Source: Rhodosorus marinus CCMP1338 (lineage: Eukaryota > Plantae > Rhodophyta). Taken from it: a DNA stretch of 64,000 bases. Both the position numbers and the translations under genes were made by a program. Shown here in pieces: positions 2,118 through 62,589 of this stretch; within the stretch, counting starts at the first letter, position 1, and each line of letters begins with the position of its first letter. The stretch lies in contig JAMWBK010000009.1 of assembly GCA_029953675.1 (NCBI GenBank), forward strand, positions 62,001-126,000, in the 5' to 3' direction. Under the pieces are notes generated by a model. It was not told the DNA's origin. It made no database searches and saw nothing but the letters and a program-made list of their open reading frames with translations.

Positions 2118-2853
2118 TGAGGACATTCATCTGCTATGTTGACAGTTTGGAGCGGTCCAAGGGGCAGGAGGTTGACGCAATCAGAACCCAAACTGGAGCT
2201 AAGATAGAAACCCTTAGAGGTGCATCAGATCCTCGAACGGGGAAAAACCTTCCATGCCTCGGGTGTCGATGTTCTGTTGATGGACTTTGGCTCTGCGCCA
2301 CCATGATTTCAGATACCCGCCGCCACCGCGCCCCCTCCCCCTTAAGCAACGAAGACGAGGAGCAGTGGGCTCTTGGCGTTCCATGACATGTGAACGCGTG
2401 TTCGTTTCTGGGGATGGGCGTCTGACAGTTCTCATTAAACGAATTTTCGCACACTCCCGCGGGCCTGGACATCCGAAGACGAGCGTTCATGGGTGCTCTG
2501 GTGCAGCTAGGGGGTATTGCGGTTAGGCTCCGCTGCCCTTTTTTTCTGAAAAACGAACGAGGATTGGATTCCTCCAATGTAAAATTTCCCACACTGGTTA
2601 GATTACTACTCCCAGATGACCACCCCAAGGGATGTGGTGGTGCCTCGCATGACATCTAAGTTTCTCACGCGTCACTCGGCATGCCCAAGACGCTGAATCA
2701 CATCCAGCCCATGTTTGCATAGTAGAAGCTCACTCCGTCATTGGGCAACTGTGACCACCATGCTCACGCTTCCACCGAAGCACTGATCTTCCAATTATGA
2801 CACCAAAATGATTGCGAAATCGGTACTAGGGTGAGGGCAACTCACGAGAATGG

Positions 2854-4117
2854 ATGCTTGATTGGCAGGAGGGAGTCGATGGACAGAAACAACATATGCA
2901 GGGACTCCAGGACCTTGTATGCTTCTACTTGTATGCTATCGTAATATGGAGCCGCCAGCTTTTTCGAAATCTACTCGTTGGAATGGAGCGTCCAAACCCA
3001 TCAAGGTTTGCTCAGGCATCTCCAAGAATATGCGGAAGAAAGTTCCTTGTCACTGGGACTGGATCGGGCATTGGAAAGGTACTCTGTGATGAGCTGCACC
3101 GACTGGGAGGGATTGTGGTAAGGTTTTGGAATAGTAGAGCAGTGCCTGCTGAAGGCACGAAGCTGAAAATGTGTAGATCGTTCATGCAAGAGACAGGGCT
3201 CGGTTATTAACAGAAATCGCATCTATATTTTTTGCTCCGAACAGATAGCGCTCCATGGACCCCACACCGACGCTCCCAGAACGGCGTCTGACGCGTATGG
3301 ATGTGATTTTACCAGCGTTGAGCAGATCAGAGCCACAGGGGCTACAGTAGCCAAGCGACATTCAGATATCGACGTTTTGGTACATTGTGCCGGTGTGATG
3401 TTCCCGAAGGCCCTGAACACAGAAGACGGACTTGAAACAACAATACAAGTGAACAGTATAGCGCCTTTCATTTTGACAGAAGCACTACAAACTGGCCTGG
3501 TCCGACCTCCTCGTGGTATGCCGTTTTAACGGACTTGCCCTAAGAAAGAGTGAGTGCGGGACTGGTTGCCTTCGTTCAACTTTCTTTACTGTTGTTTCTT
3601 ACGATATCCAGCACTGGTATTTTTGTCATCTGAGATGCACCGATGTTTTCCCATTTGCACCTGGAGGGCTTCATATGTGCACACTCGAAGATCCAGATAC
3701 CACGCGTATGCCCTATCAAAGCTGTGTGCGCACGCATTACTTGGACGTCGCAGCGACGCGGAGACAAACTTATTTGTGCACCCAGGAGTAGTTGACACAG
3801 CTTTGTACGAGAATGAAACCGGTATTCTAGGATCAATGGTCCGATTTGTCCAAAAGCTCTCTTTCTGGTCACCCGAGTACTGCGTGCGGGAGCTCCTGGC
3901 ACAGGCTATTGGTCCGAGCCTTGGAGGAGACCTGAGCGGAAAGTACGACCTGAAACCACCAATCTATTTGAACCTCCCCGAACGGACGTCTTGGCCGCTG
4001 AGTATTCCTGACGATGAGTACGGCGAACTGCATGCACATCTTGCGCGTGTGGCGCATCAAATCAAAGAGAATGACCACTCTGCTTCTGGGAAGTTGCCCC
4101 GTACAGGTCATTCGTAG
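2854..4117 (+). CDS. Short-chain dehydrogenase/reductase, retinol-dehydrogenase-like (about 3 exons)
   Basis: LVTGTGSGIG (TGxxxGIG), DVLVHCAGVM, GLETTIQVN, YALSK (YxxxK) and VHPGVVDT joined across GT-AG introns near 3118-3245 and 3515-3600. Confidence 0.88.
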
Positions 4118-4199
4118 CGAAGTGCTCTAATTTCCACAGCGAACAGACCGAAAAACGAAGATCATGTCCGTGACAAACTTCTAAAACGGGTTTCCGGGC

Positions 4200-4545
4200 T
4201 ACGCAACTGATGGCAAGGCCTTCGAATTTCCCAAAAACGAGCCATCAGCTCTCATAGTGATGTCGCTTAGACTAGGTTTAGCTGAGATATGGTCTTGACT
4301 CTTGAACGACTTGTCAAGATGGTCATCGACGATGTCCGCCAAGCATTGCTTAGAAGCGGAGTGGGCGTTCGGCAAGATACTGGAATCCGAAACAATGCTA
4401 TCTACCACATCACCCTTTCTACGACGTACATCATCGAATTCGGATCCATCAAACGTTCACGAGGCTCGTTACTTCCGCCAGCCCCGAAAGTCTAGCACAT
4501 ATTGGGACATCGTGAATATTGTTAACTCTGGATGATACCAATTCA
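4200..4545 (-). pseudogene. Decayed Copia-type RT/RNase H junction fragment (inverted homolog of 4965-5310)
   Basis: DIVDDHLDK...ITMRADGSFLGN aligns with DILADHLDK...INITADWSSSGN on the + strand; stops upstream; Copia identity inferred from a DxSFxxN-like motif. Confidence 0.45.
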
Positions 4546-4756
4546 ATAGTTGACCTTCATGAAGCCAAGGGGGAGGGGACTCCAATTTTGTGTTGTACCC
4601 AATTGAGAATTTAACCATCTAAGGTCGACTGACCCCGGAATCATCGATTTACGTATAGACGTTATCCAAAAACACTCCCAAAGCCTGATCAGAATAGACA
4701 TTCAGGGGGTTCTCAAAAGCGCGGGATCTTCAGTAGTTTGTGTAGGTCCTCAGACT

Positions 4757-4800
4757 CCTTTTTACACCTTTTACACCTTTTACACTTTTTACACTTTTAT
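4757..4800. repeat. Tandem array of about 4.5 x 9-bp ACACCTTTT-like units
   Basis: cctttttaca-ccttttaca-ccttttaca-ctttttaca-ctttta read directly. Confidence 0.9.
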
Positions 4801-4964
4801 GCACTGGTGTTTTTTTTATGTAGCACCCCTCCAGGTGGGAGTGCAGCTTGCATGAGGCCTCATCCAAACCCAAGGGTTGAGCTTGGAGTTCGACTCCGAC
4901 TACAAGTGCAAAGAGTACGTTTCGCGTTTGCATCAAACGATCATTGAATCGTAGTTACTTTGGG

Positions 4965-5690
4965 AGGTATTTCCTGCTGTTAAATTTGCTGCTGTTCATC
5001 CTACGATGCTCTCAAGGTTCTGTTTTCCACGGCTTCTCGCTGGAGCAACGAGCCTAGTGAATGTAGGATTGATCCCCAGGTCGATGGTGCATGTTGTAGA
5101 AAGGGTGAGGTGGCAGAAAATGTTGTTTCGTATCCTGCATCTCGCCGAACGCCCACTCCGCTTCTCACCAATGCCTATGTCCGACATCCTCGCTGACCAT
5201 CTTGATAAGCAGTTGAAGACTGAAGGCCAGTTCCCGGTTGAACCTACTCTATGCAAAATCAACATAACAGCTGATTGGTCTTCCTCGGGAAACTGGACTC
5301 CTCGTCTTACTTGCTGAAATTGCCGCTTGCCGCTTAGACATAGTGTTCCAACAGTTGCAACACGGAAGATAGTGAAGGTACTTCGATATCATGGCTGAGA
5401 TAGTATGATTGCTGCTAAGCGTACTGCAGACCCGTGTTGTACACTCAATGAGGACCTCAACTATATATACACACATGCGTTCCAACAACATAACACTTCA
5501 AAAGTTGGGTTTGCATTGGAGAAACACATCGGTTTGGATAGAGGCCAATTAACTCATTTCAACGCAAGAGAGTTTACTATTCAATGCCGGGCCCAGCGTT
5601 TTGGAGACACAAAGCCGTTGCTGATGTTGCAAACGCAACATAAAAACCCTTCAACAATAACGGAATTCGCAAGCCAGAGGGCTGACTGAA
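4965..5690 (+). pseudogene. Decayed Copia pol 3' end (RT C-terminus plus RNase H)
   Basis: Frameshifted pieces ADWSSSGN, TGLLVLLAE, IMAEI, EKHIGLD..QL...NARE and GDTKPL occur in Copia RNase H order; purine tract aaaaagggagcagaaaa follows near 5725. Confidence 0.45.
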
Positions 5691-5989
5691 TTTCGCTACG
5701 GCCCGCAGTTTAGGCTCAACACTAAAAAGGGAGCAGAAAAGTATTAGCAATTCATTAGTTCCTAGGATTTACACGTACTATATTCTACGAGTATAGACTA
5801 GTCAAGACGCGCTGTACGGGGATTAACCCTGACCAGATGGGAGCGGTCTATCGAAGCAGTCTTATGCCTATGGGCGGGCCCATGTGCGTTTCCCGAAGCA
5901 CGGGTTTATCAGCGTTTTAACCAGATGAAAACCAGATTTCCGAATCGCATTTGGAGTATGAAGCTTGACGGCGTAACCTCCAATGAAGA

Positions 5990-6288
5990 TGTTGAAACGG
6001 TCACGGGGCAACGGTGACGATACGCTCTCAGCATCTAGGAGGATGATTCACACATGGTCACACATACGGTAGGACCGATGTGAAAACAGTATACGGTAGA
6101 CAAACCATATAGAGGTTCACACATTTGAAATAGTTTGAACAGTACAAGCTATCGATCTTCCCCATAGTATAGTAGGATACTTAAGTGGTAGATATCGAAC
6201 ACAAGGGTCAGGGAAACCAATAAAGAAACCATCGAAGTTCGCTTGGTGCAGCCTCTTTCAAGGTTGGAAACCAGTAAAAATCTCTACA
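5990..6288 (+). repeat. Copia LTR, left arm (299 bp)
   Basis: TGTTGA...TCTACA termini, AATAAA near 6219, followed directly by PBS-like TGGTCTCATCGC. Confidence 0.8.
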
Positions 6289-6731
6289 TGGTCTCATCGC
6301 TTGGTGCGATTACAACGAAGACAGAGGTTTAGTTTTCAAGGGATAATGACGACGAGAGCTATGTCACGGGCATCGACGAGGCAAGGTCGAGAGACTTCGC
6401 ATTGCCAACAGTCTTCTCGGGGGATCAGGATTCGTACCAATCCTTCCGAAACTGGAGGCAGCAAGTGGAGTGTTACCTGGCTGTCAAGGGCCTAAAGCAT
6501 GTCATTTATCAACCGCAGGATGCAGCGGACGAAGAGAAAACGTTCGTGTCGGCGGTTTTGTCCCGGGTGCTGGATGGACCGGCGCTGGACACCGCCTATG
6601 CATCCTCCAGAGAGGCCACGCCAGACGAGGCATGGGCTGCGTTGCGGGCAAGGTACGAACCATCGTCCAGGAGAGCGGCAGTCAACGTGTGGAATGGAAT
6701 CAATCGGCGGAAGCTACGTCGTGGGGAGGCT

Positions 6732-7067
6732 CCGCGCTCCTTGACGATGGTTCGTACCTTGCCCGCAACGCAGCCCATGCCTCGTCTGGCGTGGCCTCTC
6801 TGGAGGATGCATAGGCGGTGTCCAGCGCCGGTCCATCCAGCACCCGGGACAAAACCGCCGACACGAACGTTTTCTCTTCGTCCGCTGCATCCTGCGGTTG
6901 ATAAATGACGTGCTTTAGGCCCTTGACAGCCAGGTAACACTCCACTTGCTGCCTCCAGTTTCGGAAGGATTGGTACGAATCCTGATCCCCCGAGAAGACT
7001 GTTGGCAATGCGAAGTCTCTCGACCTTGCTTCGTCTCCAGATGCCCGTGACATAGCTCTCGTCGTCA
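6732..7067 (-). pseudogene. Truncated Copia gag N-terminus; in frame in the right arm, frameshifted by a 4-bp deletion in the left arm
   Basis: ORF 6700..7113: MTTRAMSRASGDEARSRDFALPTVFSGDQDSYQSFRNWRQQVECYLAVKGL...EAWAALRARYEPSSR. Confidence 0.8.
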
Positions 7068-7125
7068 TTATCCCTTGAAAACTAAACCTCTGTCTTCGTT
7101 GTAATCGCACCAAGCGATGAGACCA

Positions 7126-7417
7126 TGTAGAGATTTTTACTGGTTTCCAACCTTGAAAGAGGCTGCACCAAGCGAACTTCGATGGTTTCTTTATTGGTTT
7201 CCCTGACCCTTGTGTTCGATATCTACCACTTAAGTATCCTACTATACTATGGGGAAGATCGATAGCTTGTACTGTTCAAACTATTTCAAATGTGTGAACC
7301 TCTATATGGTTTGTCTACCGTATACTGTTTTCACATCGGTCCTACCGTATGTGTGACCATGTTGGAATCATCCTCCTAGAGCGTATCGTCACCGTTGATC
7401 GCGTGACCGTTTCAACA
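7126..7417 (-). repeat. Copia LTR, right arm (292 bp)
   Basis: Reverse complement of the left LTR with an 8-bp and a 1-bp indel and a few substitutions. Confidence 0.8.
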
Positions 7418-7599
7418 CGTTATAAAGGACAATTGCATTTACCTGGGCTTTCTCAAGTGCACCCTGCAGGCTGCTCTCCGCGACAAGTTAAAATTTAGCG
7501 GGTACAGCCTTCTTGTCCTCACAACAGCTGTACTTCTTTGTCAGTCAAGAATTACCTAAGCATACGGTGAATGGAGTTGCCAGGCAGCACGATGAAAAG

Positions 7600-7810
7600 C
7601 CCCGCTCGTCGATGACGGGCGGCCCAAACAAGCCTTTTTACCCAATATTGATACCAACTCATCCTGCAAGCACCTCGTGAAGTTCCAAACGCGCAATCCT
7701 TCCGTGTATGGATCTTGCCGAGAGGCCCAAGAAGCTTTGTGGGTGTTCACGACGGATTCGATAGGGGTATCTATCTACTTGCAACGCACAGTGTATCGCG
7801 GAAACAAGGT
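7600..7810 (-). pseudogene. Decayed Ty3/Gypsy RNase H-like fragment
   Basis: Frameshifted VVNTHKASWASRQDP / GRIARLEL resembles the VVTDHKALxWL...KDPxGRLARW motif. Confidence 0.4.
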
Positions 7811-7974
7811 TCCATCTGGTCCCAGGAATGTCAAGAGAGCAAGTGCACAATACGCAAGCAATGAATTACAAAACAGAAGATGAGGAACAAAGTAGTGACG
7901 CAAACTGCATCAGCATCACCATACCCCCGAGTTCTATTTCACCTCATAGCACTCCTCAGCTCATTCATTTATTT

Positions 7975-8269
7975 CTGGTTGGAAGTACAACATACCCGGA
8001 AGCAAGCGCCTAGATATCTCTTCGAATCAGTATTGAACGCCAGCCACTCCCTCCGCCTGGAAACTTGCACTTCAGAATATTTTTTAAAAATAATCCTCCC
8101 ACCCAAGATAGGATCATATATTTTCCGGGTTGGAAGTCCACCACCCCCCACCACGACCGGAAGCGAGCACGTAGATATCTCTTCGAATCAGTAGTGAAAG
8201 CCAGCCTCTCCCGCCGCCTGGAAATTGTACTTTAGAAATTTTTTAAAAATATTCCTTCACCCCAGATAG
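7975..8269 (+). repeat. Diverged direct duplication, about 150-bp units (7975-8111, 8126-8269)
   Basis: Shared core tagatatctcttcgaatcagta and ccgcctggaaa...ttttaaaaata...agatag. Confidence 0.85.
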
Positions 8270-8770
8270 CGCCACATACGTATATATATATATATTTCTT
8301 TTTCACTGATCTGTCTGATGTTTTTCCTATCGATGGATTTCCCAATCCTACACAAGACAGAACGCGAAATTGAGGGAAAGTAGCCTGCCTCCGGCTCGCT
8401 GAGGTTTGAAGCTGGTGGGAACGCTGGGTGAGGCGTGAGGAAGCAGAGCTCCAAATTTGCAAAGGCGTATTGTCTTCATTTTTGGGGGAAGGATCAGGCA
8501 GACTCTTTTCGAATTTGGGACAGTCTCATTCGTTCTGTTAGCTCGTGTTAGCTTGATTGCCCAAAACTTGGCCGGTAATTGGCCTTCACGGGACTTCAAT
8601 CCTAGCAGGTGTTTTGTGCAGCGCGTATGGTGGCTTCGAGAAGTAGGTACGCTTGAATGTGGACGAGAGTGAAGCGGAAGGGGGTTTGTCCTAGTGAAAG
8701 GGCTCAGTGATGTAATGCGCGGCGGCATTCGCAGAGGAATCTGGTCAGTATATTTCGGGACAATCAAGCA

Positions 8771-9334
8771 ATGCTAGCGGGTTTCGTTCTGGTCGCGGTG
8801 CAGAAGAGGAACGGAGCGGAGAGTGCAAAGCGAAAGGTCCATAGGTGTCGGCTTTGTAGGGCAGTAGGACACAACGTTAGGACCTGCCCCGAGTTGAAGA
8901 AGGTTAGGCCGGAGGGGTTTTACAAGCAAATCTGCAGCGTATGTGGAGTTGAGGGTCATAACAAGAGGAATTGCCCAAAGAATTCTAAGTGTACGGTCTG
9001 TAGCGGAACGAGGAGAATACTCTGCAAGGCCTGCAGTGGTTTCGGAACCTTGAGTGGTCTGAAAAAAAATGTGGAGGACGACTCTCCTATGAAGTCTTCC
9101 CCACACAGTGGACCCTTGGGAGTGCTATACGACTCGTCGGCAGAGTCCCAGAGTGATCTGGAGATGCTTCAGCGCGCTCGACGACGTGTGCAGCACCACA
9201 TGCAGCTGATGCACCAGATTTCCGCGGAGAACTCGGACTTGGACTACTTTGTAGGAGGAACGGCTAGAGCGAATGATCAGTGCCGGGTCTGTATGGGGAA
9301 GGGCTACTTGAGATGCCTTTCATGTGCGGCTTGA
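8771..9334 (+). CDS. Zinc-binding protein: two CCHC knuckles plus a split DnaJ-type cysteine-rich finger (5' exon probably upstream)
   Basis: CRLCRAVGHNVRTC and CSVCGVEGHNKRNC (CX2CX4HX4C); CTVCSGTRRILCKACSGFG and CRVCMGKGYLRCLSC (CxxCxGxG repeats). Confidence 0.75.
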   Translation: MLAGFVLVAVQKRNGAESAKRKVHRCRLCRAVGHNVRTCPELKKVRPEGFYKQICSVCGVEGHNKRNCPKNSKCTVCSGTRRILCKACSGFGTLSGLKKNVEDDSPMKSSPHSGPLGVLYDSSAESQSDLEMLQRARRRVQHHMQLMHQISAENSDLDYFVGGTARANDQCRVCMGKGYLRCLSCAA

Positions 9335-9876
9335 GGAGCATTATGAGTTAAAGCTCGTGACTTTGGAGTTCTCTTTGTGGAACGCAAACCATGCGTTGGG
9401 GTGGTAGGAAGAATGTCGATTCTGATGAACAGTTGAGCTTTGGGTAACCTCGGTGTTGGTTCTGGATTAATGTGCAGGCCAGGAAAGTCTGTCAGAAAGG
9501 GCAGATTATTGAGAACTCCCCGCGTGAGTGAGTAGATTGTTTTGTGTTGAGTTCCGCTTCTGAAATCCTCGATTTCTAATAAGGAAGGGGCTGAAAACAG
9601 CCATAGGAAAATCGCCGTCAAATCCTTCAGCAGCGTAAGCTCTACGTCGCTTTTATATAAAACTAAAGGTCTGGTGCAGAATGTCCTTCGTCGTTTTCCG
9701 ATTACTTAACAAGTTCATTTTACAAACATAAACGGAACTTATGGGAAACATCAATTTCCGCCCTCCCTGATTGTGAACACTAGCTCAACTCCTTTGAAGC
9801 AGAACTCCTAGGAGTCAGATCAATTACCTATACATAAACGGAAGCCCGCCAAGTTCAACGAGGCAGCCTCCGTCGC

Positions 9877-10203
9877 CTACTGAGACGAAATGAAATACGG
9901 CACGCCAAAACCGAAGGATGACTCTCTCTTCTTCCCGTCGCCACTCGTATGCATGAAATTCACGTACGTATCAGGGCTGTACGAAACAGGATCTGGGACG
10001 TCGAAGTCTCCTAGCGGCAGGTCGTATTCGTCCGCTAGCTCAGACTCAGGCTCACCGACGTGGCCAAGAACATCGGCGTTGCTCAAACACTTCGGGTTGT
10101 CTTCCCAGTCATTTGAATACCCAAGACATGCACCGAAGCCTCTGCTCACCCGCTTCTTATCTGAAAGTCCAGAGCTGCTCCTCCTCCAGCGAAAGATCTT
10201 CAT
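9877..10203 (-). CDS. Hypothetical protein or terminal exon
   Basis: 108-aa ATG ORF with plausible composition; no family recognised. Confidence 0.25.
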   Translation of the reverse strand: MKIFRWRRSSSGLSDKKRVSRGFGACLGYSNDWEDNPKCLSNADVLGHVGEPESELADEYDLPLGDFDVPDPVSYSPDTYVNFMHTSGDGKKRESSFGFGVPYFISSQ

Positions 10204-11286
10204 TTCACACAGTAAAAAGAAACGTTTAGCCTTGATACTCCTGTGCTGCCAAATGCCAATCTTGTCGATCCTACCGAACCATCAACTCCGAGGTCTACCC
10301 CGCAATGTTCACCAGTCGGTTGCTCTTATTCCCCTCGGTAAGCCGCGCCCATTCCCACTCCAAACACCATTCGCTGGATATGGCCATACGTAGCGCAAGT
10401 CAACACAATCTAGTTTTCGGATGAGATGGGAAGGGGAAAAGCGGTCAAGCGCCAACGGCAACTCCCTTTTACCCTTGCACGCGCTAAATAAGATGGCGGT
10501 GTTAGCCAACCCTTCCCACAATCACTCCAAAAATTAAAAGACAAAAGAGAAATCACATCGATGGGGCAAGTGCTGGTGGATTGGATAGTGAAAGCTATCC
10601 AACTCTTCGCGACCAATTAACAATCCTGAACAGGCCAGAACGGTCTAATTTGATTGTCGAACCCTTGGAACAAGTCGTGGTGTCTCATGCCATCCGACAA
10701 CCGTACCTTGCAGAAAAAACATCAAAACTAAAAACAAATTTGCTCAATTTTGGGGGGTTTCCAACATTTGCAGAAGGGGTAGTCACTGTGACTTGTAACG
10801 TGGAAGGCTACAGCCTTCCCCGTTAAAGATATCCCCAATAAACAAGAAAAAACTTCGTACCCGTGAAAGCCAGGCCAATTTCTGGAACTAGTTTTAGTTC
10901 CTAGATTCATCTTGTTTTGGAGCCGATTGTAAATCTCAATTTTCAGGGCTTCCTTTTCCAGAAAACTCCAGCTATGTGGGCTGCAATATTTGCGTCTTGG
11001 TCGTTCTTGTTCTACCCAGGACAACGCCAAATCTAGCTCGATAAGCCTATTCCGACAATAGACCGCTTATTTCTCAGCGTCGAAATTAATACAAAACAGA
11101 TTGGTTTCCGGGGTTCAGCAGCTGCCTCTGAAACAGTCTAGAAGTTATCCTTCCGTGCAACTGCTGCTTTTGTGAGAGCCGCTTCACAGATAAGATAATC
11201 TATCAAGCACCACAGTGAGACCAACTCACAGACATCGTAGTCAGAATGGAGTCCAGCCTCACCGCAGCACACTGAAACTATGGTTG

Positions 11287-52921: not shown

Positions 52922-53210
52922 AGCACTGCACACCGTAGTTTGCCATCAAGTGGAAAGTGGGAGACAGCTAAATGCTGCATATCCAGCACTTGACGAAAGC
53001 ACTCACACAGTCGTTTGCCATCAAGTGGAAAGTGGGAGACAGTTAAGTGCTGCATATCCAGCACTTGACGAAAGCACTCACACCGTCGTTTGCCATCAAG
53101 TGGAAAGTGGGAGACAGTTAAGTGCTGCACATCCAGCTTGACGAAAGCACTGCACACCGTAGCTTGCCATCAAGTGGAAAGAGGAGACAGTTAAGTACTG
53201 CATATCCAGC
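52922..53210. repeat. Minisatellite, about 3.9 copies of a 73-76-bp unit
   Basis: Units start at 52922, 52998, 53073 and 53146; core TTGCCATCAAGTGGAAAG..GAGACAG. Confidence 0.95.
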
Positions 53211-53357: not shown

Positions 53358-54026
53358 TCAGACCTTTTCGATCGTGTACGTTCCAGGTGGGATTCCCTGG
53401 AAAGTGCTCGCCAGGATGCTAACTATGGGGAGCCTCCTCCCAGGTGCCAGGGGCATGTCCTCGCTCATAAACGTTTCTCCAGCGTCCGTTCCGGCGTCCC
53501 AGGCGGATAAGTTGCCCGTCTTCATCTCGAAGTATTCTCCAGTCTCCACATCACACATGTTCGTTTTTTCGATACCTGTGAACCAGTCGGGACTGGGGAA
53601 GAACATGGAGATCGCAGAAATGTATGGGCGTGCGCCGTGCACATCAAGCGTGTAGGAGATTGTCGAGGTTCCCGATGCAGGACCATCAGCAACCACACGC
53701 TGGAAAACGTTGCGATAGTTCTCCGTCTTGAGCTCGTCGGTGATTGCCGACGTACCTCCGGTCTCCGCTACCATCTGAACACCAGGGCTAGAGTATCCAA
53801 GAGGGCTCCACATTGTGTAGTACTCTCCGTGGCTCGCAACCACAAGCGGCGAGAAAAGCCCTCCCTCCGGATACGACATGGGATGAGTCGCAGCGCTCCA
53901 GGAATACGCAATCGTTACTTTGTATGTAACCCTCCCCGAGCAGGGGAACATTGAGAAAACACCCTCTGCCGAGGCCAGATTCAAGAAGGCCAAGACCGTC
54001 GCCAAACATACTGCTGAAATTCTCAT
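53358..54026 (-). CDS. Secreted Spondin_N (F-spondin/mindin-like) domain protein
   Basis: Signal peptide; WSAATHP..YP, FSPLVVASH, SPGVQMVAETG, SMFFPSPDWFTG, WDAGTDAG. Confidence 0.92.
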   Translation of the reverse strand: MRISAVCLATVLAFLNLASAEGVFSMFPCSGRVTYKVTIAYSWSAATHPMSYPEGGLFSPLVVASHGEYYTMWSPLGYSSPGVQMVAETGGTSAITDELKTENYRNVFQRVVADGPASGTSTISYTLDVHGARPYISAISMFFPSPDWFTGIEKTNMCDVETGEYFEMKTGNLSAWDAGTDAGETFMSEDMPLAPGRRLPIVSILASTFQGIPPGTYTIEKV

Positions 54027-59595: not shown

Positions 59596-62589
59596 CTAGT
59601 GCTCTTCGAGACTTGAGTGGGTTTTCGTTACCGGGTCTGCTGCACTGTTACGCTGCCTCAGCCCCTCCAGCAGAGAGTCTCTGTGCGCCCCAGTCGAGGC
59701 TGAAAGCGTCTCCAACGCTTTTAAGAGGCTGTAAGTTTCATCCTTGCCTATCCCAATAGGTTTGCCCTCTGCACGCGCGTCCGTCGATGGGAGAAGGATG
59801 GAAGCACAGTCGTAGACTACCACTCCTGTGATACAACATGAACGCAGCAAACTGATAAATCGAGTACTAGGGCAGCAGAGAATTTGTGAAATTTTGGAGG
59901 CGCGATTCGTACCCCAATGTGCCTCGGGTAGTCCACCATTCGCTCCGAGCAGGGCAGATGCAGAGGAGGCTGCATCCCTCGCCGCAGAGGATTCCTCATC
60001 CGCATTGATCAACGATGCTTGAAGCTCAGAGTACATACGCAGGTAGTCCAGCTTTTCCTGGATCAACGGGTTGTCGCAAACGCTGATTGCTTCGGCAGTT
60101 CTACAACAAGGACACGAGGTGATCAGAATAGATCCACTCCTCAGCACGGTATAGACTTGACCAGTCTCTCTTTTGCAAGTAATGAACTAATGCAGAGTCC
60201 ATGCTCGACAAATCCGGGAGCAATGAAAATGTCGATGGAACGCTTTTCAGGTAACCCTCTACTCGGAAGCCTGGAACACCTGGGCACTTTTGACAAATTC
60301 CGAAACCCACCTGTCAAGAGCCTCGGCACCCGCTGAATGGCAACCACCTATCTCCGCGGATGTCAGAGAGGCCTCTGCCTGAGCTACTGCACGTTCAGCA
60401 TCATTCGCACGCGTAAACCAATACGTTGCTCCAGCAGAATTGCCAATGACTGCACAATTCGAGGCCAGCCTAGTACATATCTTACGAACGACCATTTCCG
60501 AGCGCTTCGGAGATACTAGCCACGAAATAAGCATGAAGTCCAGTAAGGAAAGCAAACCGGAGCTTGCCATGTGCGAAGAATGTGGCTAACTGGAACACTT
60601 ACATTTCTTGCTTAAAGCGAACACTTTCTCAACGGCAGGATCAGCAGCGCTCTGCGTTTCCATTCGACAAAGTATATCAGTCAGGATTTCCTCCCCGCGC
60701 CTGCCGCATGAAAGGAGGTAGTCCGCACTGAGCTGAACTGTGCCTCGAAGGGTTTCCAGACTCAACGCATACTCGCTAACAAAATAGTCGCGAAGACTCT
60801 TCTGATCGTTAGCCGGGACCATGTAGAGGTCCAACTGATGTTCCCGAAAATAAGTGAGTAGAAGATCTACAAAATCAGACCTCACGTGATTTGCGGAACT
60901 GAAAGTAGTGGAGGCCGTGCTGGCTCTGGCGGTTCACCTTTCCGGCTCTGCTGAACAGGTCAGCAAGATGTGCAGAGTAGAAATACTCCCCCGGCCGCGC
61001 CAGTACGACGATCGACTCGGGAGGGTTGGAATCCGCGAGGGCCAGGAGCGCCTTATGAGTTGCTTGAAAGGCGCTTGCGATCTCAACGGATCGCTTTCTC
61101 CTATCTGCTGGGTCACCACCCACTCTGGTGTACAAGTACCCTGCTACGAACAGCTCCTCCCAACTGCGACAGGACTTCTGCAGTGCGGAAGGTTGTCCGC
61201 CAAGTACGCCGAGCAGCAAACCAAGTTGACTGTACAGAACATAGTGGCACCACCCCGAGGTCAATGAAGCGAACAAAGGCTGACACAGACTCTGGACTGA
61301 GCCGACAACGACCGTGCGACTGTGCGACCGCGCGCCCAGTTCATCCAGCTGCAAATCTAATCGAAAGCTTGTAGACTTACTTGTCACCAGACTTAACGTC
61401 GAGCGCCTCCAAAGTAGCAATGCACTCCTCCTGCCAAACCCGAAACTGGCCATCCAGTCTGGCCTCAGCTGTGTCCGGGGGAGCATCCAACAGCGCAGCC
61501 TCTGCAACCTGCGAGAAACAAGGGTCTATTGAACTAAGACCATTACCCGCTGGACTCTTCTTCGAAAAACTTGACGTACATAAATAGGCTCGGAGGAACC
61601 TGCATCACCCAACGCAGCAGCCCCCATGGCTCTGCTATCAACATTCTGGATTCTAGTTTGAACGAGCTCAGTGGCATCCTCACGCCGACCTATAGCAGCA
61701 AGCCGAGAAACTACCTGCCAGAATTGTGTTTCTTCTCCACACGAAATGAGGTTGTACTGGTTCAGTCACTAGGAATGAGAGTAGGTCGTTCACGGCACAG
61801 GAGGTGTGCAACTAAGTAAGGCGGGGTCGACTAGGATTAGCATGCAGAGCGGAGTATATGCCAATATCTTAGGTGCCAGTTCGAATCTGGAGGTCATTCG
61901 ACAAACGCAACAGTTCACTAGCTCACACAAATGTTGTCAAAGCAAGTGACCTACCATCTCCGCCGTCCAAGTATGACTGGACAGCCTCGTCGACACCGGC
62001 ATCGTGTACCCTGAGCCAATCACGAAGGAGTGAGAGAGCAGAATCCTTGGACTCTGGTACGTATTAAAGCAGGCGAACGAGTTCCGGATCAGTTACTTGG
62101 GATTAAGAAGGGCGTCTGAAAACACTTGGCAACGTACCGTCAACGAAGTACAGGGCTTCACAAAACCAGAGGATCTTGTGACCTTCCGTGACGACGTCCA
62201 ACAACTGCAGATTCTGGGCAGACGGGTTATGCTCCTTCGCCAGTGCTTCAATGCACTCTTGGATCACTGCGCGATAGCTTTTGCTCTTTTCCGCGACGCT
62301 CATGTCTGATGTGAAAATCAAATGTGCCTAGACATCATTCAACATGAATTCCAGAGAAGCGCTCCTCCGTCGTCAATAGGCAGCAAGTGCTACATCCTCT
62401 TAGATAGACAGTCAATCTGGGTTTGGAACAAAAACCAACCTGATACTTCATGGACAGGATCGCCGATACATTCTGAGCTCGTGGGTCTAATATCCGAAAC
62501 GGAACACCGTCTTCCGTATTCGAAGCTCCCACCGAAGATACCGCAATACTGCCGCCGGGAGCCCATGATATTGATCGCTGCGCTCCCAT
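59596..62589 (-). CDS. NUP85: Nucleoporin Nup85/Nup75 (multi-exon)
   Basis: ILWFCEALYF, WEELFVAGYLY, YFYSAHLADLF, LRDYFVSEYALSL, SADYLLSCGRRGEEIL. Confidence 0.8.

Follow-up and report, generated by a model that had tools for sequence, protein, structure and literature searches.

Inverted duplications of transposable element (TE) sequence with the potential to form hairpin RNA are an already recognized class. Inverted segments can also be made during DNA synthesis at short microhomologies, as in the twin-priming 5′ inversions of LINE-1 elements and in the self-priming, or snap-back, of reverse transcriptase. In maize, the Mutator family is silenced by hairpin RNA from Mu killer, which arose naturally as an inverted duplication of the 5′ portion of MuDR, according to the passage of PMC11624286 that cites Slotkin et al. 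(2003, 2005). For the Arabidopsis Copia element EVD, antisense nested or head-to-head insertions, which bring long terminal repeats (LTRs) into opposition, have been proposed as “LTR hairpin” silencing triggers, with the small interfering RNA (siRNA) output left untested there (PMC11624286). In yeast, Ty1 complementary DNA (cDNA) replication intermediates are captured at breaks by nonhomologous end joining (NHEJ) (PMC11372161), and fold-back synthesis primed by microhomology occurs at breaks over much shorter tracts than those considered here (bioRxiv 10.1101/2024.03.07.583931). Here we describe a palindrome of ~1.4 kb in the red alga Rhodosorus marinus CCMP1338 in which the 5′ portion of a Copia LTR retrotransposon is present twice, with the two copies facing inward. 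It occupies positions 5990–7417 of the window, by which we mean the whole 64,000-nucleotide stretch analyzed (positions 62,001 to 126,000, forward strand, of contig JAMWBK010000009.1, GenBank assembly GCA_029953675.1).

In both Mu killer and this palindrome, a terminal repeat and the beginning of an autonomous element's first gene are present as an inverted duplication, and transcription would yield a long hairpin that matches the 5′ end of that element. Mu killer, however, derives from a DNA transposon, and its transcription, its siRNAs and its heritable silencing in trans have been demonstrated, whereas the locus described here comes from an LTR retrotransposon in a red alga, has arms with their own promoters and is known from its structure alone. 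Thus, the analogy to Mu killer drawn in a first-pass annotation of this DNA holds for structure only, and the same idea had already been raised for Arabidopsis Copia (PMC11624286). The locus shares with EVD its Copia superfamily, the presence of two opposed LTRs of one family at one locus and a possible role as an siRNA source. The EVD loci arose by integrase-mediated nested insertion and have LTRs ~2–2.5 kb apart, whereas here we find a compact fold-back with a 53-nt loop and no target-site duplication (TSD), which is probably a template-switch product. LINE-1 twin priming and reverse transcriptase snap-back concern non-LTR target-primed reverse transcription or short minus-strand events; in contrast, the molecule that we infer here is plus-sense LTR-retrotransposon DNA carrying the unique 3′ (U3) region. 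As in yeast Ty1 cDNA capture (PMC11372161), a partial Copia-type cDNA would have been inserted by end joining with no TSD, and as in yeast fold-back insertions (bioRxiv 10.1101/2024.03.07.583931), microhomology-primed synthesis would have led to an inverted duplication. The yeast fold-back events are mostly 5–34 bp, whereas the arm here is ~670 bp and is fixed in a natural genome.

Local alignment of positions 5960–6740 with the reverse complement of 6670–7450 paired a left arm at 5990–6678 with a right arm at 7417–6732, with 673 of 694 columns identical and a 53-nt spacer between them. The same two blocks, with 99% complementarity, emerged from a repeat search, in agreement with the arms and spacer that had first been annotated. 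The match between the arms is far beyond chance. The only comparable repeat elsewhere in the 64-kb window is an old, unrelated inverted repeat at ~4203–5314. No further copy or fragment of the arm sequence was found in the window, either by the repeat search or by sensitive blastn and tblastn searches, which gave chance matches only. The five bases outside each end of the palindrome (GAAGA and CGTTA) are unrelated; thus, as had been noted, there is no TSD.

Each arm comprises an LTR, a primer-binding site (PBS), a 45-nt leader and the N terminus of gag (~107 codons). In the left arm, on the plus strand, the LTR spans 299 bp (5990–6288; TGTTGAAACGG...TCTCTACA) and contains an AATAAA at 6219–6224; the equivalent of the R/U5 boundary, which corresponds to the poly(A) site of relatives as given by the end of the L008 transcript (below), falls at ~6248–6251. 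The PBS, TGGTCTCATCGC, follows at 6289–6300, and gag starts at the ATG at 6346. The right arm lies on the minus strand, with an LTR of 292 bp (7126–7417) that lacks the 8-bp sequence CTCAGCAT and, by arm alignment and comparison with relatives, ends exactly at the U3 terminus of the family. Its PBS (7114–7125) is the mirror image of 6289–6300, and its gag (codons 1 to ~107, 6747–7068) is in an intact frame from the ATG at 7068. This frame is open for 122 codons, continuing past gag through 15 non-gag codons to a stop at 6700. The left gag copy (6346–6745, plus strand, ~133 codons, from translations and phmmer homologues) is frameshifted by a missing TGGA between 6374 and 6375, and it runs through the spacer into the first 12–14 nt of the right arm.

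The arms differ by eight substitutions and three indels of 1, 8 and 4 bp, the same tally as in the first-pass annotation. The 1-bp indel is at 6006. The 8-bp indel is CTCAGCAT, present only in the left arm (6026–6033), and the 4-bp indel is the TGGA, present only in the right arm (7036–7039). Three complex difference events fall within the first 62 nt of the arm, and the arm alignment contains none within 6052–6374. The 4-bp indel clusters with one substitution at 6375–6380, a single substitution lies at 6500, and two mismatches, at 6668 and 6674, adjoin the spacer. As described below, these last two reflect native gag sequence.

The identity of the arms was settled by relatives. Pfam gave no match to the 113-amino-acid open reading frame (ORF) of the arm even at E ≤ 1, and a word-indexed homology search with the gag fragment likewise gave no match. 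An exhaustive phmmer search returned seven gag homologues (E values from 7.6e-29 to 3.5e-05), most of them from R. marinus transcriptomes; homologues also occur in the green alga Tetraselmis striata. A profile search with the gag alignment found only R. marinus and Tetraselmis relatives, none above 64% identity, and the nearest family sequences found are gag fragments from other strains that are 64–70% identical. The right-arm gag N terminus, MTTRAMSRASGDEARSRDFALP, lines up with MPTRTRGSKVEHDARLKDFALP of the relatives. Although Pfam was silent, comparison with these sequences upheld the assignment of an LTR, a PBS and ~110 gag codons to each arm.

Five related contigs (L001, L002, L003, L005 and L008), whose gag is just 47–64% identical to that in the window, carry the 12-mer TGGTCTCATCGC directly after ...ACA. 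This conservation places the junction between LTR end and PBS at 6288/6289 of the window. A PBS-pattern scan of metagenome contigs gave no matches. Contig L008 has both LTRs, and both align with the window arms over their whole length. Its 3′ LTR opens with TGTTGGAACGGT / TGTTGGAACGGTCAG immediately after a polypurine tract, GAGAGCGAGGGGGAG; thus, the arms begin exactly at the U3 terminus of the family, TGTTG(G/A)AACGGT. The L008 transcript has a poly(A) tail after GAAGTTCACGATTG, 3′ of the conserved sequence AATAAAGAAACCA.

Other parts of the element were also recognized in relatives. L001 encodes a CCHC knuckle and a DSGATDH protease motif 3′ of gag; L003 encodes a protease and then, judged by eye, an integrase-type H..LGH...CETC finger; the C terminus of pol in L008, ...VADLLTKVL, lies just ahead of the polypurine tract; and in P0085, a more distant Tetraselmis homologue, the homologous gag is fused to RVT_2 (E = 2.8e-35). 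The order gag-protease-integrase-RVT_2 is found in the relatives only, and the window keeps the gag N terminus alone. In the window itself, the LTR has TG...CA ends and a 5′ end at the family terminus, the PBS lies directly after the 5′ LTR, and an integrase-made TSD is lacking. Since the LTR, PBS and gag anatomy was fixed by the relatives' contigs, we identify the arms as genuine 5′ ends of a Ty1/copia LTR retrotransposon. Despite this Copia sequence, the lack of a TSD indicates that the locus is not a normal integration product.

Several features of the family were apparent from these comparisons. The PBS forms part of a 22-nt block, TGGTCTCATCGCTTGGTGCGAT (6289–6310 in the window; 72–93 in L001; 495–516 in both L005 and L008), that is identical in these sequences though gag is ~47% identical, and within it ATCGC/GCGAT could pair as a small stem. 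The primer 3′ end implied by this block, GCGATGAGACCA, is not known to match the end of an initiator tRNA, and a tRNA scan of the window found no tRNA genes. Contigs L008 (1–1747) and L005 (1–1672), from R. marinus transcriptomes, represent an expressed, internally deleted Copia derivative in which the ~1.0 kb between the LTRs holds the PBS, gag, a short stretch, the last ~45 pol codons and the polypurine tract. They appear to be a nonautonomous element of the same Copia family. In L003 (548–668 and 882–1035), plus-strand gag is joined to an integrase zinc-finger fragment, followed by two fold-back junctions, with arms of 41 and 61 nt and loops of 39 and 32 nt, into protease-integrase sequence on the opposite strand. 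These are either artifacts of RNA sequencing or assembly or further fold-back-rearranged copies of the family. The only other detectable relatives of the gag N-terminal domain are Tetraselmis striata gene models (P0081 and P0084–P0090; ~30% identity), and in this red-algal Copia family the domain falls outside every Pfam model.

The junction between the two copies was read by comparison with the gag of the relatives, which follows the pattern ...RRK(L/M)...(E/D)T-PRSL-(I/V)NWL..., with PRSL 20 residues past a conserved SSR (P0076 and the L003 translation); P0077 has SRSH at the PRSL position. The left-arm frame of the window has SSR-RAAVNVWNGINRRKLRRGEA-PRSL, with GEA before PRSL and the identical 20-residue spacing. 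Here, PRSL is encoded by 6732–6743 (CCG CGC TCC TTG), the apparent first bases of the right arm. At this place, the left arm in reverse complement gives CCG CTC TCC TGG, which encodes PLSW. It is precisely the mismatched bases, at 6736 and 6742, that create the R and the L; of the 594 two-substitution combinations possible in those 12 nt, just one yields PRSL.

Since PRSL occurs at the spacing seen in the relatives, the left copy runs to ~6745, and we conclude that 6732 to ~6745 is native left-copy gag and not a diverged copy of the other arm. The spacer (6679–6731, plus strand), which forms the hairpin loop, had been described as continuing the left-arm gag. Alignment to the relatives bears this out, in that it holds native gag codons (...AVNVWNGINRRKLRRGEA), and native gag extends on into 6732–6743. 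Because these bases encode the gag PRSL, the mismatches at 6668/6742 and 6674/6736 do not represent divergence between the arms, although both had been included in the original count of eight substitutions. Two synonymous gag changes had also been proposed. Of these, CAT/CAC at 6500 stands, TCC/TCA at 6668/6742 lies inside the fold-back microhomology, and GAG/GAA at 6380 is a further synonymous difference.

The native gag sequence at the junction takes part in an inverted match. Positions 6664–6678 (CGTCCAGGAGAGCGG, plus strand), a putative fold-back priming site, match 6732–6746 (CCGCGCTCCTTGACG, plus strand), which is native gag (PRSL followed by T) and a putative snap-back primer, at 13 of 15 nt. 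Within 5990–6746 no other match of this quality occurs with a loop of ≤150 nt, and any such match was present in only 2% of shuffles. Beyond 6746, the sequence copies the complement of the left arm from 6663 back to 5990. Just this signature is left when the 3′ end of a strand snaps back and primes on the strand itself or on a like-sense sister strand.

On balance, we favor the view that the locus is a defective, palindromic partial Ty1/copia copy that arose by fold-back of extrachromosomal cDNA and integrase-free insertion. The starting molecule would be a plus-strand cDNA intermediate with a 5′ U3 end and a 3′ end ~457 nt past the PBS, that is, one strand carrying the 5′ end of the element in sense (U3 terminus, R, U5, PBS and ~133 gag codons; 5990 to ~6745). 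The 3′ end of this strand (6732–6746) would pair with the imperfect 15-nt inverted match 53 nt upstream (6664–6678), and extension would copy the same or a sister strand back to its 5′ end. The palindromic product would then enter the chromosome without integrase, likely through end-joining capture at a break. During later decay, TGGA would have been lost from the left arm and CTCAGCAT from the right, and each arm would have gained a few substitutions. This model needs the family gag to read ...GGGGAGGCT CCGCGCTCCTTG (PRSL) (A/G)T....

Several aspects of the locus bear on these steps. Since the inverted copy includes U3, which is absent from the 5′ end of genomic RNA, the template was presumably DNA. 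Since the inverted copy stops at the LTR terminus and the flanks are unrelated, the template was presumably linear and ended there; a chromosomal template is disfavored, as copying would continue into the flank. No pol or other piece of the element was found on either strand of the flanks (2700–5989 and 7418–11200), where the search recovered nothing beyond a gene for a short-chain dehydrogenase and an ORF with CCHC zinc knuckles that is cellular. The lack of pol nearby, together with the lack of a TSD, argues against both normal integration and nested insertion, and the missing TSD points to integrase-free entry. The copying enzyme could be a host polymerase rather than reverse transcriptase, since microhomology-primed fold-back synthesis is documented at breaks. 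R. marinus nuclear DNA is unusually rich in nuclear mitochondrial DNA segments (NUMTs), which enter by NHEJ (PMC10250338). This richness and the capture of Ty1 cDNA in yeast make a cDNA-capture route credible.

Four other explanations were considered and ruled out. If an arm continued into a full element or the locus were a nested insertion, pol or other element pieces would be present in the flanks. Chromosomal fold-back at a broken integrated copy would have extended the inverted copy past the LTR end into the flank. Autointegration would produce circles in which the LTRs are internal, whereas the LTR termini here face outward. A Foldback element or other DNA transposon with long terminal inverted repeats is incompatible with arms that are homologous to Copia LTR-PBS-gag sequence and that lack a TSD.

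Some observations weigh against a fold-back of cDNA. The hairpin formed by the snap-back has ordinary stability (z = −0.03 relative to shuffles). The arms are not identical, as they differ by six substitutions outside the microhomology and three indels, and half of the difference events fall within the first 62 nt of U3. Moreover, both of the substitutions inside gag are synonymous, and this pattern also fits two source copies. Our case for a cDNA origin and for the end-joining step is purely one of geometry, and the conversion of a hairpin cDNA to an integrated linear palindrome would take extra steps that we only postulate. Comparison with the relatives revealed that each arm has one private derived deletion and a few substitutions. 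The position of CTCAGCAT is occupied in the relatives and the 8 bp look ancestral; other U3 sites are too diverged to polarize. These private deletions fit later decay of one self-copied molecule and two separate sources alike. The first-pass annotation had proposed two distinct family members joined by deletion or template switch. The junction is indeed of the template-switch type, and the private changes are as compatible with later decay as with two members.

Possibly, two family members inserted tail-to-tail and a microhomology-mediated deletion then joined gag to gag. Such a deletion needs near mirror-image breakpoints, 68 nt apart, in elements of several kilobases. We put this coincidence at a few per cent, provided that every inverted match in the element could be used. 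With one of the two elements read as its reverse complement, the 13/15 match could equally serve as a direct microhomology, although a short loop is a prediction of intramolecular snap-back. Two insertions would explain the exact LTR termini, the unrelated flanks and the missing TSD partners with no extra assumptions, and the arm differences somewhat resemble family polymorphism, in that they are biased to U3 and both gag changes are synonymous. However, the 64 kb contain no other copy or fragment of the family, and side-by-side insertions would be unexpected in a genome reported to be 15% repeats (PMC10250338). We consider this origin rather unlikely, though the strongest of the competitors.

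The genome of R. marinus CCMP1338 is available as a published 31-Mb Nanopore assembly (PMC10250338). It was polished with short reads, and since polishing is weakest in repeats, some arm differences could be errors. Even so, an assembly or library artifact, whether a chimeric fold-back read or a collapsed repeat, is highly improbable, in line with the view of the first-pass annotation that this is no simple read artifact. Fold-back read artifacts center on fragment ends and span kilobases, whereas here the two arms end at one and the same biologically defined LTR terminus, and the sequence on either side is unique. The junction carries native gag and microhomology, the 64 kb contain just one other inverted repeat, which is old and unrelated, and the 4-bp and 8-bp indels are bordered by 2-nt repeats, as is usual for real deletions. 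What probability remains, beyond these explanations and the fold-back of cDNA, we leave to mechanisms that we have not thought of.

The locus encodes nothing functional, and its capacity to form a hairpin is its sole built-in property. In a folding prediction, a 1008-nt model RNA (6200–7207) formed a single uninterrupted hairpin (−1027 kcal/mol). As had been anticipated, any transcript crossing the locus would be predicted to fold into a near-perfect long hairpin. The suggestion that either LTR would give a ~690-bp double-stranded RNA was overstated: since a transcript that starts in the LTR is without U3, its stem would extend from a start site upstream of ~6250 to 6663, a length of at least ~414 bp. 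The full stem, ~670 bp, would form only in a transcript that reads through from a flank. As the two LTRs face each other, convergent transcription is possible.

Whatever its origin, the locus might act as a working silencer of the Mu killer type, in which hairpin RNA from LTR-driven or read-through transcription is processed by Dicer to siRNAs that repress intact family copies in trans. Besides the continuous hairpin formed by the model RNA, the part of the LTR that expressed relatives conserve (TACTTAAGTGG...AATAAAGAAACCA) is retained in both arms, and the family is transcribed in R. marinus strains. Among the other mesophilic classes of red algae, Argonaute is reported from Porphyridiophyceae, Bangiophyceae and Florideophyceae, and it is lacking in Cyanidiales; Stylonematophyceae lay outside the sampling (PMC8304369). 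However, the arms are decaying in the usual way, and nothing suggests that selection has maintained their complementarity. The same structural potential exists in every inverted fragment of a TE, which makes the prior low. We therefore hold a functioning silencer to be distinctly unlikely. Less likely still, and a long shot, is the combined proposal that plus-strand cDNA snapped back at a break and so created, in one step, a self-promoted hairpin gene that silences its own family in the manner of Mu killer.

If the fold-back of cDNA is the true origin, nature has provided here a clean case in which an aberrant intermediate of LTR-retrotransposon replication became fixed in a genome, with a junction kept well enough for the mechanism to be read from the microhomology, the template end at U3 and the lack of a TSD. 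It would also illustrate a simple route by which a retrotransposon family, with no need for two insertions, makes an inverted repeat directed against itself. The novelty is modest but concrete and lies in a compact Copia fold-back, found naturally in a red alga, whose junction records its making. We know of no TE-derived trigger of RNA silencing described in red algae. If transcribed and diced, the locus would be the first candidate for such a trigger in this group and would offer a tractable test of RNA interference in Stylonematophyceae. For now, the locus is a curiosity of structure whose function is only a candidate one; the structure is real and its origin informative, and silencing is unproven.

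The palindrome lies in a gene-containing region. It is located between an intron-split short-chain dehydrogenase gene (2830–4114, plus strand) and an ORF with two CCHC knuckles (8711–9331, plus strand). The latter also contains CxxCxGxG-like motifs and is a cellular gene, not a retrotransposon gag. A transcript from the left LTR would head toward this ORF on the same strand. Elsewhere, the window encodes a sugar transporter, a zinc-dependent dehydrogenase, C2H2 fingers, GET4, Nup85 and a Spondin_N protein. The Spondin_N ORF is 86% identical to an R. marinus transcriptome protein, and its next named matches are from Pyropia and Porphyra, as expected for a stylonematophycean alga that is near to, yet distinct from, the R. 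marinus strains represented in databases. Look-ups by exact sequence of the right-arm ORF and the Spondin_N ORF returned no record.

Other duplications occur in the window. The older inverted duplication, 700 bp to the left of the palindrome, has arms of ~280 bp (4203–4485 and 5035–5314) that are ~72–75% identical and flank a spacer of ~550 nt. This repeat (4203–5314) has no Pfam match and no similarity to the Copia arms; it contains outward-facing ORF remnants with a common D(I/V)xDHLDK motif. A tandem duplication of ~155 bp lies 550 bp to the right of the palindrome, at 7967–8252 (units 7967–8091 and 8118–8252, 74–79% identical). Finally, a 75-nt unit is repeated three times in tandem at 52929–53153, with 76–95% identity between units, just upstream of the Spondin_N gene (53358–54026, minus strand).

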